Sequence record: MK568540.2
Length of the DNA: 64,000 nucleotides
Strand: one strand, 5' to 3'
Shown: one piece after another, positions 3,841 to 55,195 of the stretch
Numbering within the stretch: position 1 is the first letter of the stretch
Layout of the letters: every line of letters starts with the position of its first letter
The notes under the pieces: model-generated
What the model saw: only the letters and a program-made list of their open reading frames with translations
Database searches by the model: none
What the model was told of the DNA's origin: nothing
Program-made: the position numbers and the translations under genes

Positions 3841-4352
3841 TATTTCACCCCGCTCTCACCGAACCCACTAGCACCGCGGTCAGTTTCTTCGTCGAAATCA
3901 TCAACTACTTCAAACTGCACGTTTTTCACGTAAGTGTGGAAAATCAACTGACAGATACGATCACCGCGCTCAATATGCAGCACGTCGTCGCCTTCGTTGC
4001 GAATCTTGATCATGATTTCGCCTTGATAGTTCGCGTCGATAATCCCGATTGTGTTTGCAAGGCGTAAGAAGTGCTTGAACCCAAGACCGCTTCGCGGTGC
4101 AATCGCGCCGTATACACCTAAATCAGTGAATACTCGATGTAGTGGGTGCGAACCAATATGAATCTTGACACCAGACGGGATAACGACTGAATCACCCGGT
4201 TGTAGCTCGATTGACTCTTCAATTGCAGCACGCAGATCAATACCCGCGTCATCTGGGTCTTTCACACCAATTGGCTCAATTGCTTTTAGACCAAGTTCTT
4301 TGTTTTCTTTGTAGTGAGGCAGGTAAATAATCTTCATTAAATTTTCTTCCAT
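3840..4352 (-). CDS. dut: trimeric dUTPase
   Basis: AGIDL, PRSGLG, GIIDANYQGEI, QLIF, RGASGFGESG motifs. Confidence 0.97.
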   Translation of the reverse strand: MEENLMKIIYLPHYKENKELGLKAIEPIGVKDPDDAGIDLRAAIEESIELQPGDSVVIPSGVKIHIGSHPLHRVFTDLGVYGAIAPRSGLGFKHFLRLANTIGIIDANYQGEIMIKIRNEGDDVLHIERGDRICQLIFHTYVKNVQFEVVDDFDEETDRGASGFGESGVK

Positions 4353-5395
4353 CTGTTAAGTCGATTTGTAGCCATTAGACCGCTAACGGCATTTTCATAA
4401 ATGTATTGCTGAATGAACTCAGCAGATACACCAGCTTTGACAAAATCATTGATGTCTTTCTTATCAATAATTTGAGGTGGGAGCTTATCCCAAATAACAA
4501 CACGCTCACCCGCTCTGATTAGAACTTGAAGACGCTTTACAACGTCTGGGTGGCGAGGCTCATTATCAAGCGCCCAAATGCGATTCCCCGCATAGGGTGC
4601 ATTTTGTGGACTGACTTGTCCACCTACTATAGCACAGCAATTGTAGAGGAATAAACTATCAATCGGGCCCTCAACGAAAATAACAGGGTCATCTTCATTG
4701 ATACGCTCTGTGCCGTATATCTTGTTGAAATCGTCGTCAATTTTAATGGTCATGTATCGTTGAGCATGTTTGTTTGTCAACGCACGACCTTGAACAGCAA
4801 TCAAACCTTCTTTGTTATAGATAGGTATTACCAATCGAGGGTGGTCATTTCTAATCTCACCTTCGTACAAATCTGGGCGAAGCGTCTTAGCCATTTGAGA
4901 CCAGCCACGAGTAAACCCAAGCAAATGCCACTTGTCTTTAGGGATTTTTCTAGATTCGAGGTATTTGTGCATCACATGACCATCTTTAAGGGCAGTGATA
5001 TTATAGAAAAGTTGCTCTTCTTGTTCTTTCTCAACGACAGTCGCTTCTTTCTTTTCAACGACTGGTTCAGGTTCGCGTTCTTTACGCTCACGAGAATTGC
5101 GCTCTTTGAATAACTCGACGCGATACTGAGAAAACAACGATGGTTCGTGATCTTTCAAAAAAGTATACAGCGATTCGTTATAGTCACAGTTCCAGCAACT
5201 ACAACGTAAATGAATCTCACCAGAACGTGTCTTAACTTCATTAATCCAGAAACGTGTCTTGTACTTGTTCTTTTTCGAGTCACCACAAATCGGGCATCTT
5301 GCATTGATTTTGAATGGACGATGACTATGCACCGTAGGGAGTAGTAATCGATGCTGAAGCATCTTGGCGTATTGTATATCAATCAATATTTGCAT
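4337..5395 (-). CDS. 61: DNA primase
   Basis: CPICGDSKKNKYKTRFW zinc domain, EGPIDSLF TOPRIM, DNEPR, KDIND. Confidence 0.96.
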   Translation of the reverse strand: MQILIDIQYAKMLQHRLLLPTVHSHRPFKINARCPICGDSKKNKYKTRFWINEVKTRSGEIHLRCSCWNCDYNESLYTFLKDHEPSLFSQYRVELFKERNSRERKEREPEPVVEKKEATVVEKEQEEQLFYNITALKDGHVMHKYLESRKIPKDKWHLLGFTRGWSQMAKTLRPDLYEGEIRNDHPRLVIPIYNKEGLIAVQGRALTNKHAQRYMTIKIDDDFNKIYGTERINEDDPVIFVEGPIDSLFLYNCCAIVGGQVSPQNAPYAGNRIWALDNEPRHPDVVKRLQVLIRAGERVVIWDKLPPQIIDKKDINDFVKAGVSAEFIQQYIYENAVSGLMATNRLNRWKKI

Positions 5396-5446: not shown

Positions 5447-5468
5447 AAAAAAGCCCCGTTTCCGAGGC
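5447..5468 (-). terminator. intrinsic terminator
   Basis: GCCTCG-GAAA-CGGGGC followed by a T-run. Confidence 0.85.
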
Positions 5469-5474
5469 GTTTTA

Positions 5475-5954
5475 TTATTCGAAATGTCTGAACTTCTTCA
5501 GCTTTTTCTTTTTCTTTTTCTTACCGATAGTTTCAGGACCTGCATTAGTTACAGCACCAGTCGTTTCACCAGAAGCAATCGACTCTGGTGAGCTACTACC
5601 GTCACCCGCATCACCTGCAACAACAGCTTCTTCGACTCGAATACACTCTTTCGCGAAATCTTCAGATAACCCGTATTCTTTTGCAAGCTCAATCAGCAAC
5701 AAATAAGACGCGCCATAATCAAGTGCTGTTTTACCGCCTGGTAATGCACCAACCATGCGCTTGATATTTCTCACAGTAACATGAAACATCGTCCAGTTAC
5801 TTTTCTCTTGTGCAGTTACAGGGTCACGCAACTTCTTACCATCTGCGTCGATGATACCCATTCGATATGCTTCCCAACGTTCAAAACGAAGATGAAGCAA
5901 ACGAGACAGACGAAGAGCATAAAAACCATCTGCACCACGTTTAGCTACACTCAT
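5475..5954 (-). CDS. conserved T4-like protein (61.1-like) with Lys-rich tail
   Basis: WEAYRMGIIDADGKKLR.P.T..EKS.WT.FH..VRNIKRM family motif, SIASGETTGAVTN, KKKKKKK; lies next to primase. Confidence 0.7.
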   Translation of the reverse strand: MSVAKRGADGFYALRLSRLLHLRFERWEAYRMGIIDADGKKLRDPVTAQEKSNWTMFHVTVRNIKRMVGALPGGKTALDYGASYLLLIELAKEYGLSEDFAKECIRVEEAVVAGDAGDGSSSPESIASGETTGAVTNAGPETIGKKKKKKKLKKFRHFE

Positions 5955-6778
5955 TATGCCCCCAAGATTTGCTCAAGTTGACGATCAAAGATCTTCTCTG
6001 CTTCATCAAGTGGTAATGGTACGCTGCGCATGAATTCGTGCAGATTATCTTCGCGAATCAGATTTTCAATAGTACTAGATGGTACTTTGTTCTTGACTTC
6101 AACGATCTCGAATCGTGTTCCACCTACACGTAGGAAGTGACGACCTAGACGGCGATACTCAGCTACTTTGTTCGCTTCTACAAATGCAAACACGCGAGTG
6201 ATACCTTTTTGAATCATAGTCTCTACTTCAGCAAACATCACGCCTTTCGGTGCAACATCGACATCAGAGAACGATTCAAATAATTCAACGCGCTCTTGAA
6301 GTGATAAAACCTTGTTCTGAGCTTCAGGTACAAACACTTTACCAACAGCACCAACGTGTTCACACGCTTCAGATAATGTTTTAGTCAATTCTTTATGACC
6401 AACTGAAGGAATGCTTGAATCCACGTCCATGATACACGCAGCGTCAATCGCACACTCATTCACAACGGTTTCATGTTCGAAGAAATCTTTTTCCGAAACG
6501 ACAAATAGACCCTCATCAAGTTTAGCTGCAATTGCTTCAGCTTCTTGTTGTTGTTTCTTCATCGTTGCTTCTTCTTTTTCAGCAGCAGATTCTTTGTCAA
6601 ACATGGTGATTTTGCCGCGAATTGCGTCTCGAACACGAATGTCCATCATCGGTGTGATGTTCGCCCCGAGTTCTTTTTTCTTTTGCGTATATAGTTTCTC
6701 GATTTCAACTACACCGTCTTTGGTAGTACATTGGTGAACCGACGCAATAAGTTCTTCCAATTTATCTTTGATAGCCAT
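5954..6778 (-). CDS. fusion of a UvsW.1-like helical domain and a degenerate HIGH-class nucleotidyltransferase-like domain
   Basis: N-terminal CTTKDGVVEIEKLY...DIRVRDAIRGK resembles T4 UvsW.1; C-terminal PSVGHKEL, GITRVFAFVEANKVAEY, SSTIENLI..DNLHEF..SVP resembles phage cytidylyltransferase-like proteins. Confidence 0.6.
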   Translation of the reverse strand: MAIKDKLEELIASVHQCTTKDGVVEIEKLYTQKKKELGANITPMMDIRVRDAIRGKITMFDKESAAEKEEATMKKQQQEAEAIAAKLDEGLFVVSEKDFFEHETVVNECAIDAACIMDVDSSIPSVGHKELTKTLSEACEHVGAVGKVFVPEAQNKVLSLQERVELFESFSDVDVAPKGVMFAEVETMIQKGITRVFAFVEANKVAEYRRLGRHFLRVGGTRFEIVEVKNKVPSSTIENLIREDNLHEFMRSVPLPLDEAEKIFDRQLEQILGA

Positions 6779-6781
6779 TAG

Positions 6782-7627
6782 CTACTCCTCGTAAACAATC
6801 GTATTTTTAGTAATTCTTGATTCGAATACAACTTCAACACGTACACCATAAGGCAATGCCTTAGAACGGCGACATGCATCATTTCTAATCAACATATACG
6901 GGTGATATACAGTATCTTTAATATCTTTCGCGTTCAACAAAACATCACCGTTAATATGCAAGGTACCGCGTTTGAATACAAAATCATCTAGTGTAAAGCT
7001 ATTGACTACAACAAGACCGTTATTGAGAATGTCTGAACCAAATACAACATGATTTATTTCGTCGTCTCGTAGTCTGCGTGCGATTGGCTGGCTAAGTCTC
7101 TTCACTTTACCATCGTCAGAATAGTCCGATAATGTAACCATCTTCTTGACTATCATTTGTGATAAAAGCTTACGAGCTTCAGTGCCGTGAATAACGTCAG
7201 TACTAGCCCAACGCTCGGCATTTGATTTTTTAATCGAAATCGGAAAATCGCCGCTTACGGTCTTCAATACCATATCGGCTTTTTTGTTGTTTTTTGTGTC
7301 GTGACCAGTCATTTCAATCGACTGAACACCTTTTATTACTCGTCGACCAATTTTAATCCGAGTACAGCCAGAATCAATGTGTTGCTTTACAATATTATAG
7401 AAATTGCGTTCATTCTCGATGCCCGGATTAGATGTTGGTTTGACGTATACTCTGCATTTTTCCATCTGTATACAACCAATTGAACTGCCTGGGTCGCACT
7501 TCTTGTACGTCCCGTCAAGCTCTTTCGCAAGTTTAACAATTAGACCAAGTCGATTTTCATCTGTGTAGATAACGATCTTTCGGCTATTGATAATTCTCGC
7601 GTCATATCTTAACAAAACATCTATCAT
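6782..7627 (-). CDS. putative PD-(D/E)XK nuclease
   Basis: E ... KKADMV...ISIKK catalytic-like spacing. Confidence 0.6.
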   Translation of the reverse strand: MIDVLLRYDARIINSRKIVIYTDENRLGLIVKLAKELDGTYKKCDPGSSIGCIQMEKCRVYVKPTSNPGIENERNFYNIVKQHIDSGCTRIKIGRRVIKGVQSIEMTGHDTKNNKKADMVLKTVSGDFPISIKKSNAERWASTDVIHGTEARKLLSQMIVKKMVTLSDYSDDGKVKRLSQPIARRLRDDEINHVVFGSDILNNGLVVVNSFTLDDFVFKRGTLHINGDVLLNAKDIKDTVYHPYMLIRNDACRRSKALPYGVRVEVVFESRITKNTIVYEE

Positions 7628-7629
7628 AG

Positions 7630-7678
7630 TGCATGAACACCATCTTTAATACCATACCAGTATTTAGATGTTCATGCA
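7630..7678 (-). promoter_or_regulatory. RBS-sequestering hairpin with an internal late promoter
   Basis: TGCATGAACA/TGTTCATGCA arms with inner pairing; CTAAATA at 7661-7667 in the 5' arm; 3' arm ends 2 nt before the ATG. Confidence 0.75.
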
Positions 7679-27144: not shown

Positions 27145-27173
27145 AAAAAAAGGGAGCAATTTGCTCCCTTTTT
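27145..27173. terminator. bidirectional terminator between the uvsY operon and uvsW
   Basis: A-run, GGGAGC/GCTCCC stem, T-run. Confidence 0.9.
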
Positions 27174-27178
27174 CGTAT

Positions 27179-28711
27179 CTATGCGGCAAGATCTACTTTC
27201 TTGACTGCGTATTTGAACTCTTCTTGGTTGTAAAGCTCAATACGTTGCATACCATGCTTCATAGTATAATTTACGTGAGTGTACGGCTTCTTAGCGTTCT
27301 TACGTTTCGGCTTGATTGCCAAGTTGTCGATAATGTCAAACAGCTTCGCCGTAACTTTCGAACCGTGTTTACGTAGAATACGACCAATCGACTGCAAGTT
27401 GATGATCTTACTCTTCGTTGGGTGTGCGAAAATTACATTGTGTAGTTTCTTGATACTGATACCAGTCGAGAATACACCGTATGATGCGACAATGATCGCC
27501 CCATCAATATCTTCTGCAATCTTCTTCACATGCGTACGGTCGTCTGTTTTAGTCTCACCAGATACGTAGAACACTTTCTCTGGGTCATATACGCTCTTCA
27601 ACGCTTCGTAAAGCAATTTACCGTGTTTGATGTTCTTGAATAGCAATAACGTATTTTCGCCTTTCTTCGCGCTTAAATGATGCGCAAGCTTAATCAAGTA
27701 ACGATTTCGCTGCTTGTTCTCAAGAATGAATTTCATTTCTTCTTGATATGAACTACCTTTCATCTCGTCACGTAACGGCTGTGGGTATTCAAGCATCAAG
27801 CAATTGATCTTCAGATCTGTTACTTGCCCTTCTTCCATTAGCTGTGCAGTTGAAACAGGTCGGAAAATATCACCGAATGAACCAACGTACTGTAGAATAT
27901 TCGCTTTACCGTCTCGAAGTGAGCCAGTAAGACCGATTTTGTATTCACAGTTTGTCATTTTCTTGATTATACCGTCTAATGACTTACCTGTTGCTAAGTG
28001 ACACTCATCGACTAAAAGCATACCGAATTGGTCAAACCATTCTTTCGGTTGTTTTACAGCAGATTGCCATGTAGATACAACGATTCGGCAGTCACCGATT
28101 GCGTCTCGATCAACACCACCACGAATCTGATAAATGTCGCTGTGTTCGAATAAACGATAATCTAAGAAGTCATCGCGCATTTGCTGAACAAGTGCAGTTG
28201 TAGGTACAATCACTAATACTTTCTGAAGTTCGTGCTCTTCTTGTGCTAAGAACCATTTAGTAATCAGCGACTGAATTAATGATTTACCCGCAGATGTTGG
28301 TAGATTCAATAGACTGTGTTGGTTGTTAATTCCGTGAAACACAGAGTCCATCTGATACCAATACGGTGAAATCTTATTCGACCCTGAGTAGATGTCAATA
28401 GACTCAACCCATGCTTCGAAATCTTCACGAGAAATTTTCTCAATCGGATCTAGCATTGGATCGGTTTCAATCGTATACATCATATTTGATGCAAACGCTT
28501 TAGCTTGTCCGACTAGACCGTATGGCAATAGACCTTGATACGTCATTAGTCGAATTTTGCCATCCCAAATGCCCATTTTAAATTTTGGGTTAAATTTGTA
28601 CCCATCTGTTAGAAATGAGAAATAGTCAATCATTTCGTGAGTGATGCTTGGCTCGGCTACGACTCTCGCATAACTCTCATCGTGGTACTCAATTTTAATG
28701 TCACATGTCAT
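27179..28711 (-). CDS. uvsW: SF2 RNA-DNA/DNA helicase
   Basis: LPTSAGKS, VDECH, GLTGS, QSIGR.LR; start at MTCDIKIEY (the longer start crosses the promoter). Confidence 0.97.
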   Translation of the reverse strand: MTCDIKIEYHDESYARVVAEPSITHEMIDYFSFLTDGYKFNPKFKMGIWDGKIRLMTYQGLLPYGLVGQAKAFASNMMYTIETDPMLDPIEKISREDFEAWVESIDIYSGSNKISPYWYQMDSVFHGINNQHSLLNLPTSAGKSLIQSLITKWFLAQEEHELQKVLVIVPTTALVQQMRDDFLDYRLFEHSDIYQIRGGVDRDAIGDCRIVVSTWQSAVKQPKEWFDQFGMLLVDECHLATGKSLDGIIKKMTNCEYKIGLTGSLRDGKANILQYVGSFGDIFRPVSTAQLMEEGQVTDLKINCLMLEYPQPLRDEMKGSSYQEEMKFILENKQRNRYLIKLAHHLSAKKGENTLLLFKNIKHGKLLYEALKSVYDPEKVFYVSGETKTDDRTHVKKIAEDIDGAIIVASYGVFSTGISIKKLHNVIFAHPTKSKIINLQSIGRILRKHGSKVTAKLFDIIDNLAIKPKRKNAKKPYTHVNYTMKHGMQRIELYNQEEFKYAVKKVDLAA

Positions 28712-28737
28712 GATTTTTCTCTCTATGCGAGTTTTGT

Positions 28738-28762
28738 CTAAATATGTATAACTGTATTTATA
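28738..28762. promoter_or_regulatory. divergent late promoters
   Basis: CTAAATA on plus (28738-28744) and TATAAATA on minus (28755-28762). Confidence 0.7.
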
Positions 28763-28775
28763 GAGGTCTAAATTC

Positions 28776-28985
28776 ATGACAAGAGACGAAATGTTTTACA
28801 AGATGAAAGATGGTTGCTTTAAGTTTGAGCATAAAGGCAAGAAATATCACGCGACTTTATGCAAGCATTATCTACCACATCTTGATTGCAATCGAGAAGA
28901 ACAACGTAAAAATGAAAACGGTGCAGATAATGAACTTACATTTTTCGATTTAAATCGAAATGTGTGGGTAACAATTGAATGCTAA
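28776..28985 (+). CDS. small SH3-like protein (WYL_2/DUF2693-like)
   Basis: F....G....ATL...Y.P ... FFDL..NVW pattern. Confidence 0.5.
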   Translation: MTRDEMFYKMKDGCFKFEHKGKKYHATLCKHYLPHLDCNREEQRKNENGADNELTFFDLNRNVWVTIEC

Positions 28986-53767: not shown

Positions 53768-55195
53768 TTATGCAGTTCTTTCCCACATGTAAACAGTATA
53801 GTATGGCTGTACGTTATTATGTGGTTGACCACCACCTTCTGGTGATGAGTAATACAAGTAGTTGTCGTTATCAGTGCGACCTGAACCTGGGTTGCTTCTA
53901 CCATATTCGTATGCAACTCCAAACCCTAGTCCGTTGCCACCGTAAGTCCAACGATCACCCCAACCCGCGTGTTTGTGAGTTGGCATTGTTTCTTCAGTTA
54001 AGATAACTTCGTATTCACCACCTGTTTGTCTTACGTTGAATGTTCTACCCCCATGTGTACCTTCAGATACAAGCACGCGACCTTCTGCAATTCTAGACCA
54101 TGTTCCGCCGAATAGCGTAGCTGGTGATGTAGATTCAAGTGACATGTAAATAGCACCAACAGGGTACATATTCAACATAGCTGATGATTCAATCAGACCA
54201 TTTGTCATTAACTGAGTACCACTTACAGATTGAACATCGTCGATTTTCAATGTACCAGTTACTGTCCCGCCTGAAACCCCAATCTTTTCATTATTCAACT
54301 TATAACCCATTGCAGCACTTAGTGCTTGAGTCGCGTCGTTTGTTGTTAGATTGTTTGCAAGTTTCGCAACACCAACACGTGAGCTAGTCGCAGTGAATAA
54401 ATCTAATGTACCGACTGTGACTGCATGGTCATTAGATGTACGCGCATTTGCAACTGTTGAGTTCGGTAGATAGAAACCTGCCTTTCTCGTAGTTGTCGCT
54501 GTGCGTTCATTGAATCGATACGGTGAAATTGCTAGATTGTTTTCTGATGCTGATGTGCTGTTTACTTCAGTTGCATTTGCTAATCGAATCAACCCTTTCG
54601 TCGTTTCTGTAGCATCTGATGCGGTAGTATTCGCCCACACGTCAAGCATTTCCTTAACTCGCTGTGGGGTCATAGCCACACTATTAGACAATGTGCCTGT
54701 TGTCGTTGCTTGTGCATATGTCGCTAGCCGTACAGCACCCGGCGAAGATTCAGTTGCATAGAAACGAGTATTCAACGCGTAGTTCAATGTTTTAAGCGTG
54801 AATGCATGTTTCTGTGCTTCTTCTACTGCGGATGTCGGGTCAATGTTATCAATCGTGCTGTTTGTAATCAGCTTCACAAAACCGTATTGAAGTTCTGTTG
54901 CAGTCGCGTGATTTTCCATCCAATAATTTAATGCAGATGGTGTCACCGCGCTTGTGTTATTAAGCTCATCTGCGACTGCTGCATTATCACTTAACAATGT
55001 AATACCCGCGACAGATGTTGATGCTATAGGGTAATCGGGTAATGGTTGAAGTGCATGAGCTTGTACAAGCTCAAGACACGTTTGGAGATCGTTATTACCC
55101 CCAGTAAGACCATCAAAGGAAGTACCTTCGACTTCAACTGTAACCGTACCCGCATCGTCAATCACGTGATTGAAAATTTGAGTTCCTTTGCTCAT
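53768..55195 (-). CDS. 12: short tail fibre
   Basis: ATE...G...LAT repeats, YPVGAIYMS collar domain, MPTHKH metal site, HNNVQPY..VY.W.RT. Confidence 0.85.
   Translation of the reverse strand: MSKGTQIFNHVIDDAGTVTVEVEGTSFDGLTGGNNDLQTCLELVQAHALQPLPDYPIASTSVAGITLLSDNAAVADELNNTSAVTPSALNYWMENHATATELQYGFVKLITNSTIDNIDPTSAVEEAQKHAFTLKTLNYALNTRFYATESSPGAVRLATYAQATTTGTLSNSVAMTPQRVKEMLDVWANTTASDATETTKGLIRLANATEVNSTSASENNLAISPYRFNERTATTTRKAGFYLPNSTVANARTSNDHAVTVGTLDLFTATSSRVGVAKLANNLTTNDATQALSAAMGYKLNNEKIGVSGGTVTGTLKIDDVQSVSGTQLMTNGLIESSAMLNMYPVGAIYMSLESTSPATLFGGTWSRIAEGRVLVSEGTHGGRTFNVRQTGGEYEVILTEETMPTHKHAGWGDRWTYGGNGLGFGVAYEYGRSNPGSGRTDNDNYLYYSSPEGGGQPHNNVQPYYTVYMWERTA

Follow-up and report, generated by a model that had tools for sequence, protein, structure and literature searches.

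In phage T4, UvsW.1 is a free protein of 76 residues (Pfam PF11637; PDB 2JPN). It forms complexes with UvsW, which is itself the partner of gp32, and the complex of UvsW and UvsW.1 has reportedly been detected by Förster resonance energy transfer. The domain is conserved across T4-like phages, and the role given to it in the literature that we examined is limited to that of a "potential DNA-binding partner" of UvsW (Iyer et al. 2021; PMC7824862). In T4 and five other T4-like phages, uvsW.1 lies between uvsW and a conserved bidirectional terminator, in T4 directly after uvsW (PMC1524935). A second family of interest is the "cytitidyltransferase" of cyanophages and jumbo phages (PF01467; phrog_3041 and phrog_395; for example, S-RIM2 YP_007675634.1 and PA5oct gp177). 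Here, we describe a gene of a KVP40-like Vibrio phage, found in a 64,000-nucleotide stretch of sequence record MK568540.2 that is called the window below. The gene encodes a protein of 274 amino acids (aa) that joins a UvsW.1 domain to a second domain with the predicted fold of the HIGH-type nucleotidyltransferases. This two-domain architecture is certain. We estimate with a probability of roughly 60% that the fusion is a non-catalytic accessory of phage UvsW-dependent recombination and replication. The UniProt automatic name "UvsW.1 domain-containing protein" for the nt-1 orthologue and the presence of the family in PHROGs were already known, but we found no description in the literature of the nucleotidyltransferase half, its erosion, the fixed fusion architecture or the link to DUF6267. 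The features of the open reading frame (ORF) are as follows.

5954-6778, minus strand: whole fusion ORF, 274 aa, orthologue of KVP40.0018, made of a UvsW.1 domain, a long helix and an eroded cytidylyltransferase-like domain; full-length match to phrog_14207 (E 3.5e-188).
6569-6778, minus strand: UvsW.1 domain, residues 1-70 (Pfam match 14-69), from PF11637, a 2jpn profile match and fold superposition.
6464-6568, minus strand: linker, residues 71-105, with the end of a 45-residue helix (43-87), an extra strand and a short helix, from the secondary structure of the AlphaFold2 (AF2) model.
5957-6463, minus strand: predicted HIGH-type (cytidylyltransferase-like) nucleotidyltransferase fold, residues 106-274, catalytic motifs eroded, from Foldseek, VIA-align, BFVD and the ratio of nonsynonymous to synonymous substitution rates (dN/dS).
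6395-6406, minus strand: S125-V-G-H128, remnant of the H/TxGH signature at the turn from strand 1 to helix 1, aligned with PTxGH of relatives and ITNGH of E. coli PPAT.
6167-6178, minus strand: E201-A-N-K204, where the family has GxDR (lost), from alignment A3.
6110-6160, minus strand: E207-YRRLGRHFLRVGGTR-F223, a conserved patch specific to the fusion, from alignments of fused and unfused members.
6065-6082, minus strand: P233-S-S-T-I-E238, where the family has ISSTxxR or SASKMR, from alignment A3.

A UvsW.1 domain heads a conserved fusion protein

The ORF starts with ATG and ends with a TAA that shares its last A with the next start codon (TAATG). The 274-aa protein is 100% identical to proteins of Va3, ValKK3, VH7D, R10Z/R11Z and other phages and 95% identical to the KVP40.0018 orthologue. 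Residues 14-69 matched Pfam PF11637 (UvsW-1) over 56 of 56 profile positions, with E 2.5e-33 and 114.4 bits (cut-off 25). A search with the single sequence reached T4 UvsW.1 (2jpn) at E 0.0023, and one with the family profile at 7.4e-07. The AF2 model of residues 1-70 superposed on 2JPN with Z 8.0 and a root-mean-square deviation (rmsd) of 3.7 over 68 of 79 residues (26% identity); this Z lies in the range where helical matches need sequence support, and such support is present here. Like T4 UvsW.1, the domain is a helical bundle, with AF2 helices at 3-16, 20-40 and 43-87, and it has ITPMMDIRVRDAI where T4 has DISVRDAL. It is the best conserved part of the fusion, with 49-57% identity in the most distant family members. 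The linker is the least conserved segment, and the predicted local distance difference test (pLDDT) score falls to 57-66 there. Residues 1-70 form a true UvsW.1 domain, and profile and structure both bear out what an earlier note on this DNA had read from the sequence. The rationale of that note, binding of UvsW.1 to gp32, found no support that we could locate in the literature. The role of T4 UvsW.1 as a partner of the UvsW helicase is probably carried by the domain in the fusion too. In contrast to T4, this domain stands at the head of a 274-residue protein, 20 kb from uvsW and beside the primase gene, between genes 41 and 61.

GenBank records and the families phrog_14207 and phrog_1143 call the protein "DNA helicase" or "ATP-dependent DNA helicase". 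This annotation was rejected because the fusion has no helicase domain, and neither Pfam, NCBIfam nor the fold gave a helicase or P-loop domain. The old T4 uvsW reading frame wrongly included uvsW.1 (PMC1524935), and the label on the fusion and on free UvsW.1 proteins is inherited from that frame. The fusion could also be an artefact of annotation or assembly that joins two genes, but 50 phage records, as well as independent metagenome contigs, contain it as a single uninterrupted ORF at 27-100% identity. It is extremely improbable that the helicase label is right or that the fusion is such an artefact. The misannotation, corrected here, runs through two PHROG families and the genomes of more than 50 Vibrio phages.

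The C-terminal half has the predicted fold of HIGH-type nucleotidyltransferases

Residues ~110-272 are predicted to form a complete HIGH-type nucleotidyltransferase domain with a cytidylyltransferase-like Rossmann fold. In the PDB, Foldseek ranked PPAT highest (E 3e-5), ahead of FAD synthetase and TmcAL, and VIA-align gave Z 12.8 for PPAT, with an rmsd of 2.4-2.7 over ~140 of ~157 residues. In a fold search independent of Foldseek, the top 19 representative chains were all HIGH-type nucleotidyltransferases or unannotated look-alikes (NMNAT Z 11.6, NadR 11.4, PPAT 10.5, with FADS and CCT also among the top chains); class I aminoacyl-tRNA synthetases (at most Z 8.9) and ETF ranked lower. The fold searches thus gave the C-terminal half the five-parallel-strand Rossmann-like fold of the PPAT/NMNAT/GCT type. 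Among the viral predicted structures of BFVD, the nt-1 orthologue came first, and next in rank stood a series of cytidyltransferase-like proteins of cyanophages (E ~1e-7), including a 1021-aa protein of S-RIM2. Further family members in BFVD are 600-1270 aa long and are labelled by other domains (AAA, LysM, SET).

The best matches among solved structures are PPAT (CoaD) and archaeal or bacterial NMNAT (~140 of ~160 residues), and the S/TxGH turn of the fusion aligns with the ITNGH of PPAT. Unlike these enzymes, the fusion lacks the substrate-specific residues; it shows no similarity to them at the sequence level and belongs to neither enzyme family. An hhalign comparison with E. coli CoaD paired PSVGH with ITNGH at a probability of only 2.8%; this is consistent with the structural pairing but was not used as evidence.

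Searches by sequence did not find the fold. PF01467, with a gathering threshold of 21 bits, gave no match at E up to 1 for the window protein, nor at the locus of KVP40 or of G001, a near-identical record (79% shared). The best NCBIfam nucleotidyltransferase model was TIGR00125, at E 0.14 only, and no nucleotidyltransferase model of Pfam, NCBIfam or PHROGs was significant. Sequence and profile searches of the PDB returned no nucleotidyltransferase at E up to 10, and the window protein matched only phrog_14207 and phrog_1143, with no direct match to phrog_3041 or phrog_395. The ESM Atlas gave no usable match for the fusion protein. A weak Pfam match of residues 170-228 to UPF0102 (YraN-type nuclease; E 0.011) was rejected, as the fold is Rossmann-like and the top 19 chains were HIGH-type enzymes or look-alikes.

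The fusion descends from a phage nucleotidyltransferase

When the C-terminal 184 aa alone were searched against 1.84 billion representatives, phmmer gave 12 matches. All eight matches of 260-301 aa bear an N-terminal Pfam UvsW-1 domain, and the others are long repeat proteins in which ~40 residues matched. These matches mark the fusion as an old, fixed architecture. A search for related loci in IMG/VR with the C-terminal domain and alignment A1 returned KVP40 only.

The more distant fusions gave the link to known nucleotidyltransferases. PF01467 and the cytidyltransferase PHROGs detect three of them, the Vibrio phage protein EniLVp02_0207 and the metagenomic P0018 and P0019. The PF01467 scores (cut-off 21) were 21.4 bits for the P0018 domain, 21.6 for P0022 and 27.9 for S-RIM2, and P0019 matched the cytidyltransferase families phrog_3041 (E 3.2e-31) and phrog_395 (E 8.8e-16). 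The window protein is linked to P0019 at E 3.5e-4 in the 1.84-billion library, and its homology to the cytidyltransferase families is therefore transitive, through P0018, P0019 and EniLVp02. With the P0019 domain, tblastn found 493 phage records, mostly T4-like cyanophage "cytitidyltransferases" but also jumbo phages and nt-1. The cyanophage proteins share with the fusion the same fold, the slot between genes 41 and 61 in T4-like phages and the upstream neighbour phrog_12709. The C-terminal domain descends from the "cytitidyltransferase" gene that T4-like marine phages have retained between genes 41 (helicase) and 61 (primase). Unlike the fusion, the cyanophage and jumbo-phage proteins have kept GR[FM]NPPTxGH, GxDR and S[AS][ST][KR]xR, have no UvsW.1 domain and often carry long C-terminal extensions. 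They are also paired or even fused with DUF6267, whereas the window protein has no DUF6267 partner. In S-RIM2 (L023:5764-8826), PF01467 covers only residues 83-225 of the 1021-aa "cytidyltransferase", and ~750 C-terminal residues have no assigned domain.

Between these two groups stand fusions with intact motifs (EniLVp02_0207 and the metagenomic P0013, P0018 and P0019). They have the same two-domain architecture as the window protein, the same order of phrog_12709, fusion, gp61.1-like gene and primase gene, and the patch ExxRxGxxFLxxGGxxF. In contrast to the window protein, they keep the full set of three nucleotidyltransferase motifs (with TxAH) and score at or close to the PF01467 threshold, and a DUF6267 gene lies directly upstream of each. 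Their C-terminal domains are only 21-28% identical to that of the window protein. Active-looking and eroded versions of the domain therefore exist side by side within the fused lineage and provide natural controls for catalytic versus scaffolding roles.

In a tree, the fused proteins formed one clade (support 96/92) and the eroded members one nested group (87/83); a branch of 1.32 substitutions per site leads to the KVP40 clade. Several independent erosions of the motifs had been considered, but one event is enough since the eroded members form a single group nested inside the intact ones.

The catalytic motifs are eroded in a domain under selection

In alignment A3, the family motifs GR[FM]NPPTx[GA]H, GxDR and [IM]S[AS][ST][KR]xR correspond to VDSSIPSVGH, EANK and PSSTIEN in the window protein, and the loop before the last motif is ~10 residues shorter. 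SVGH and PSSTIE sit opposite PTVGH and SASKMR of the cyanophage proteins. Just P-S-V-G-H remains of the GxFxPxH/TxGH signature, with V, S and S at the G, F and N/D positions. In PSSTIEN the Ser residues are kept and both basic residues (Lys/Arg and Arg) are gone. The KVP40 clade as a whole has lost the GRFNP loop, GxDR and the basic residues of the ISSTxxR-type motif, and P-[ST]-x-G-H is all that it retains. Every clade member has G127, and 9 of 10 have H128. Since H128 is T in P0003 and is absent from P0012, P0014 and P0017, His128 appears to be dispensable.

The earlier note had located the motif remnants at SVGH and SSTIE, and both were confirmed, at residues 125-128 and within 233-238. Its placing of the C-terminal half in the HIGH superfamily agrees with the fold searches, and the T4-like cyanophage cytidylyltransferase-like proteins that it likened to this half are indeed the nearest viral folds and sequence relatives. 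The term "degenerate" is right. Three family motifs are eroded in comparison with these relatives, and PF01467 and the cytidyltransferase PHROGs are blind to the window protein. S/TxGH alone, however, is no sign of degeneration, since the corresponding residues of E. coli PPAT are ITNGH.

In the patch E207-F223, the residues E207, R210, G212, F215, L216, G220 and F223 are found in at least 12 of 13 fused sequences, and the patch differs in the unfused S-RIM2, PA5oct and P0022 proteins. The basic residues R209, R210, H214, R222 and K231 are invariant in the clade. The dN/dS of the nucleotidyltransferase-like part (Nei-Gojobori) was 0.023 for window/KVP40, 0.096 for window/nt-1 and 0.072 for KVP40/nt-1, similar to the 0.04-0.07 of the UvsW.1 part; these ratios are approximate, with dS about 1 or higher. 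The nucleotidyltransferase-like domain is under strong purifying selection and is clearly maintained, not decaying.

One alternative reading is that the domain is still an active nucleotidyltransferase with a remodelled site. Brought to recombination intermediates by UvsW.1, it might, for example, transfer an adenylyl or cytidylyl group to a small molecule, a protein or the end of a nucleic acid. The low dN/dS and the complete fold (Z 12.8) would fit an enzyme, as would the catalytic His and preceding Gly, which 9 of 10 clade members retain at the correct place in the structure and in the TxGH form of the active enzyme PPAT. The five invariant basic residues could stand in for those lost from GxDR and SxxKxR. 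Yet, of the four motif elements lining the nucleotide site in every near relative, three have been replaced, His128 has been lost in P0003, P0012, P0014 and P0017 while the rest of the protein was kept, and the best nucleotidyltransferase model is the insignificant TIGR00125. We consider an active enzyme unlikely, though a serious alternative.

Another reading is that the eroded domain is a sensor that binds a nucleotide or cofactor (an NTP, or an NAD- or CoA-related compound) without turnover and couples UvsW.1 and UvsW to the nucleotide state of the cell. This would account for the retention of the S/TxGH turn and the basic residues without the rest of the catalytic apparatus, and it suits a phage rich in nucleotide and NAD metabolism, with nrdD and nrdG in the same cluster and two canonical PF01467 genes elsewhere. 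The replacement of the GRFNP loop, which contacts phosphates and ribose in the relatives, and the loss of His128 in several lineages make a sensor quite improbable.

Motif loss coincides with loss of the DUF6267 gene

The partner gene was examined with hidden Markov models built from our own alignments. The order phrog_12709, DUF6267, nucleotidyltransferase is found in EniLVp02, P0018, P0019 and the IMG/VR loci fetched with the 281-aa phrog_12709 protein, and in fused-family loci the gp61.1-like gene and the primase gene are directly next. In S-RIM2, DUF6267 lies directly upstream of the nucleotidyltransferase in the interval between genes 41 and 61, and the two are fused in locus L060 and in phrog_455. 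All four intact-motif fusions (EniLVp02, P0013, P0018 and P0019) have an intact DUF6267 gene directly upstream. No such upstream gene was detected for the window protein, P0012 or P0017, and P0014 has a 341-aa remnant that scores 16 bits and lacks KxDG. DUF6267 is absent from the whole genomes of KVP40 and G001, in which the position between 41 and 61 is itself kept. The missing partner is a further point against an active enzyme in the window phage.

The DUF6267 genes examined lie outside the window.

L013:6929-7996: DUF6267 gene.
L007:6853-7995: DUF6267 gene.
L023:4866-5759: DUF6267 gene.

Fourteen DUF6267 sequences share VTVKWDGAP, QGDFLF, EGFV and VKLVDR, with K27, D29 and G30 invariant, and these stretches resemble motifs I, III, IV and V of ligases and capping enzymes. 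With an AF2 model (pLDDT 86), ATP-dependent DNA and RNA ligases topped both fold searches at modest scores (Foldseek E 0.02-0.1; VIA-align Z 6.5 for NgrRnl, 6.2 for REL1 and 5.8 for T4 Rnl2, over 165-187 residues). Motifs and predicted fold together make it quite probable that DUF6267 is a ligase-like covalent nucleotidyltransferase, which suggests a function for this Pfam family.

Proposed role of the fusion

We propose that an active nucleotidyltransferase originally worked with a ligase-like partner, that it then gained UvsW.1 at its N-terminus, and that the KVP40 lineage later lost both the partner and the catalytic motifs and retained a selected, fusion-specific, non-catalytic role. The C-terminal domain would no longer transfer nucleotides. 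A second role, which would have arisen with the fusion, could be that of a scaffold, an oligomerisation module or perhaps a nucleotide-binding module, and in it the domain may place UvsW.1 on the UvsW helicase or on branched DNA, or regulate it there. For the surface involved, the best candidate is the patch EYRRxGxHFLxxGGxRF, which only the fusions have. The protein would be expressed from the middle gene of a three-gene unit (nuclease-like, fusion, gp61.1-like) just upstream of the primase gene.

Several points weigh against this proposal. With G127-H128 and the invariant basic cluster still present in the clade, nucleotide binding or even catalysis may continue. The motif correspondence is based on alignments at 20-28% identity, and the AF2 model of the 274-aa fusion (pLDDT 87) was built on only 10 sequences. 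The grouping of the eroded members could be long-branch attraction. The joint loss of the motifs and DUF6267 gives the direction of change, but it counts as one observation and is not replicated, because a single event in the tree can explain both losses.

A broader suggestion, which we make tentatively and consider rather doubtful, is that UvsW.1 may belong to an undescribed nucleic-acid module of T4-like phages. This module would comprise the PD-(D/E)xK-like protein, the ligase-like DUF6267, the HIGH nucleotidyltransferase and the gp61.1-like protein, beside the primase. Together with UvsW, it would handle intermediates that are branched or contain RNA and DNA, for example R-loops, primers or regressed forks. 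The KVP40 clade would then have lost the two enzymes as a working pair, and the shell of the nucleotidyltransferase would have stayed on as a pseudoenzyme that regulates UvsW. The lineage in which UvsW.1 occurs only as a fusion provides a concrete, testable link between UvsW.1 and a module with nucleotidyltransferase, ligase-like and nuclease-like genes.

The uvsW locus has no second UvsW.1 copy

The uvsW gene of the window lies far from the fusion.

27179-28777, minus strand: uvsW helicase gene, with no uvsW.1 behind it (UvsW_N, E 4.5e-29, with ResIII, DEAD and Helicase_C).
27145-27173, strand not assigned: bidirectional terminator hairpin directly after uvsW, from folding of both strands.

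AAAAAAAGGGAGCAAATTGCTCCCTTTTT stands directly behind the uvsW stop and folds on either strand, with energies of -18.7 and -16.6 kcal/mol (z -6.9 and -6.0). The hairpin GGGAGCAAATTGCTCCC is flanked by runs of A and T and lies within 27145-27173. A simple terminator scan missed this hairpin, and direct folding reveals it. Convergent genes, a DUF2685 gene among them, lie past it. Domain search and hairpin folding confirm the earlier claim that uvsW ends at this terminator without UvsW.1 behind it. To call UvsW.1 relocated, as was also done, is a fair conclusion because the terminator abuts uvsW here, compared to the order uvsW, uvsW.1, terminator in other T4-like phages. A Pfam search of G001, KVP40 and EniLVp02 found exactly one UvsW.1 domain per genome, the fusion, and for the phage of the window this count rests on G001. 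No free copy of uvsW.1 was found by that search in G001 or KVP40.

Neighbouring genes

The fusion gene is flanked by the following features.

6782-7627, minus strand: upstream gene, 281 aa, phrog_12709, with a PD-(D/E)xK-like pattern, conserved upstream of the nucleotidyltransferase gene in phages and metagenomes.
5475-5954, minus strand: downstream gene, 159 aa, gp61.1-like (phrog_2086, with phrog_1823 in the C-terminal part), whose start overlaps the fusion stop (TAATG); labelled gp61.1 in nt-1.
5453-5468, minus strand: terminator-like hairpin with a T run, from folding, which ends the three-gene unit before the primase gene.

The gene block has the usual T4-type order of uvsX, 41, nrdD, nrdG, phosphoesterase, three-gene unit, 61, dut and dexA, with the primase gene at 4337-5395, beyond the hairpin. 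PADLOC gave no match for any protein of the three-gene operon, and a search of RNA sequencing runs returned none that contains this stretch.

In the 281-aa protein, E73, D118 and S131-I-K133 are invariant among 20 sequences, in a PD-(D/E)xK-like pattern; no Pfam, PDB-sequence or PADLOC match was found for it. A phrog_12709 protein is also present in T4-like phages of Stenotrophomonas and Xanthomonas. Between the phosphoesterase gene and this ORF, a hairpin at 7630-7678 (minus strand) has a stem of 12 bp (GCATGAACA...TGTTCATGC; -18.3 kcal/mol; z -3.3). Its loop contains TCTAAATA, a 7/8 match to the T4 late-promoter box.

The fusion ORF begins 3 nt past the stop of the 281-aa ORF. The two are in one frame and are split only by TAG CTA (6779-6784), with the same spacing in KVP40, nt-1, F86 and D485. 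Read-through of this in-frame TAG was considered and dropped, as the two ORFs overlap in different frames in phage D479.

Two further genes of the phage genome, outside the window, exceed the PF01467 threshold, in ORFs of 347 and 327 aa (G001:C1:28956-29129 and 53901-54224; KVP40 94519-94683 and 113629-113922). The 347-aa ORF is likely the NMNAT-Nudix protein NatV. The phage thus has canonical HIGH nucleotidyltransferases in addition to the eroded one.

The 159-aa gp61.1-like protein is 47% identical to the product of the gene downstream of P0018 and is better conserved than the fusion in distant relatives. It is translationally coupled to the fusion through TAATG. Its C-terminus has a Gly/Ala/Ser-rich stretch followed by a KKKKKKKLKK tail.

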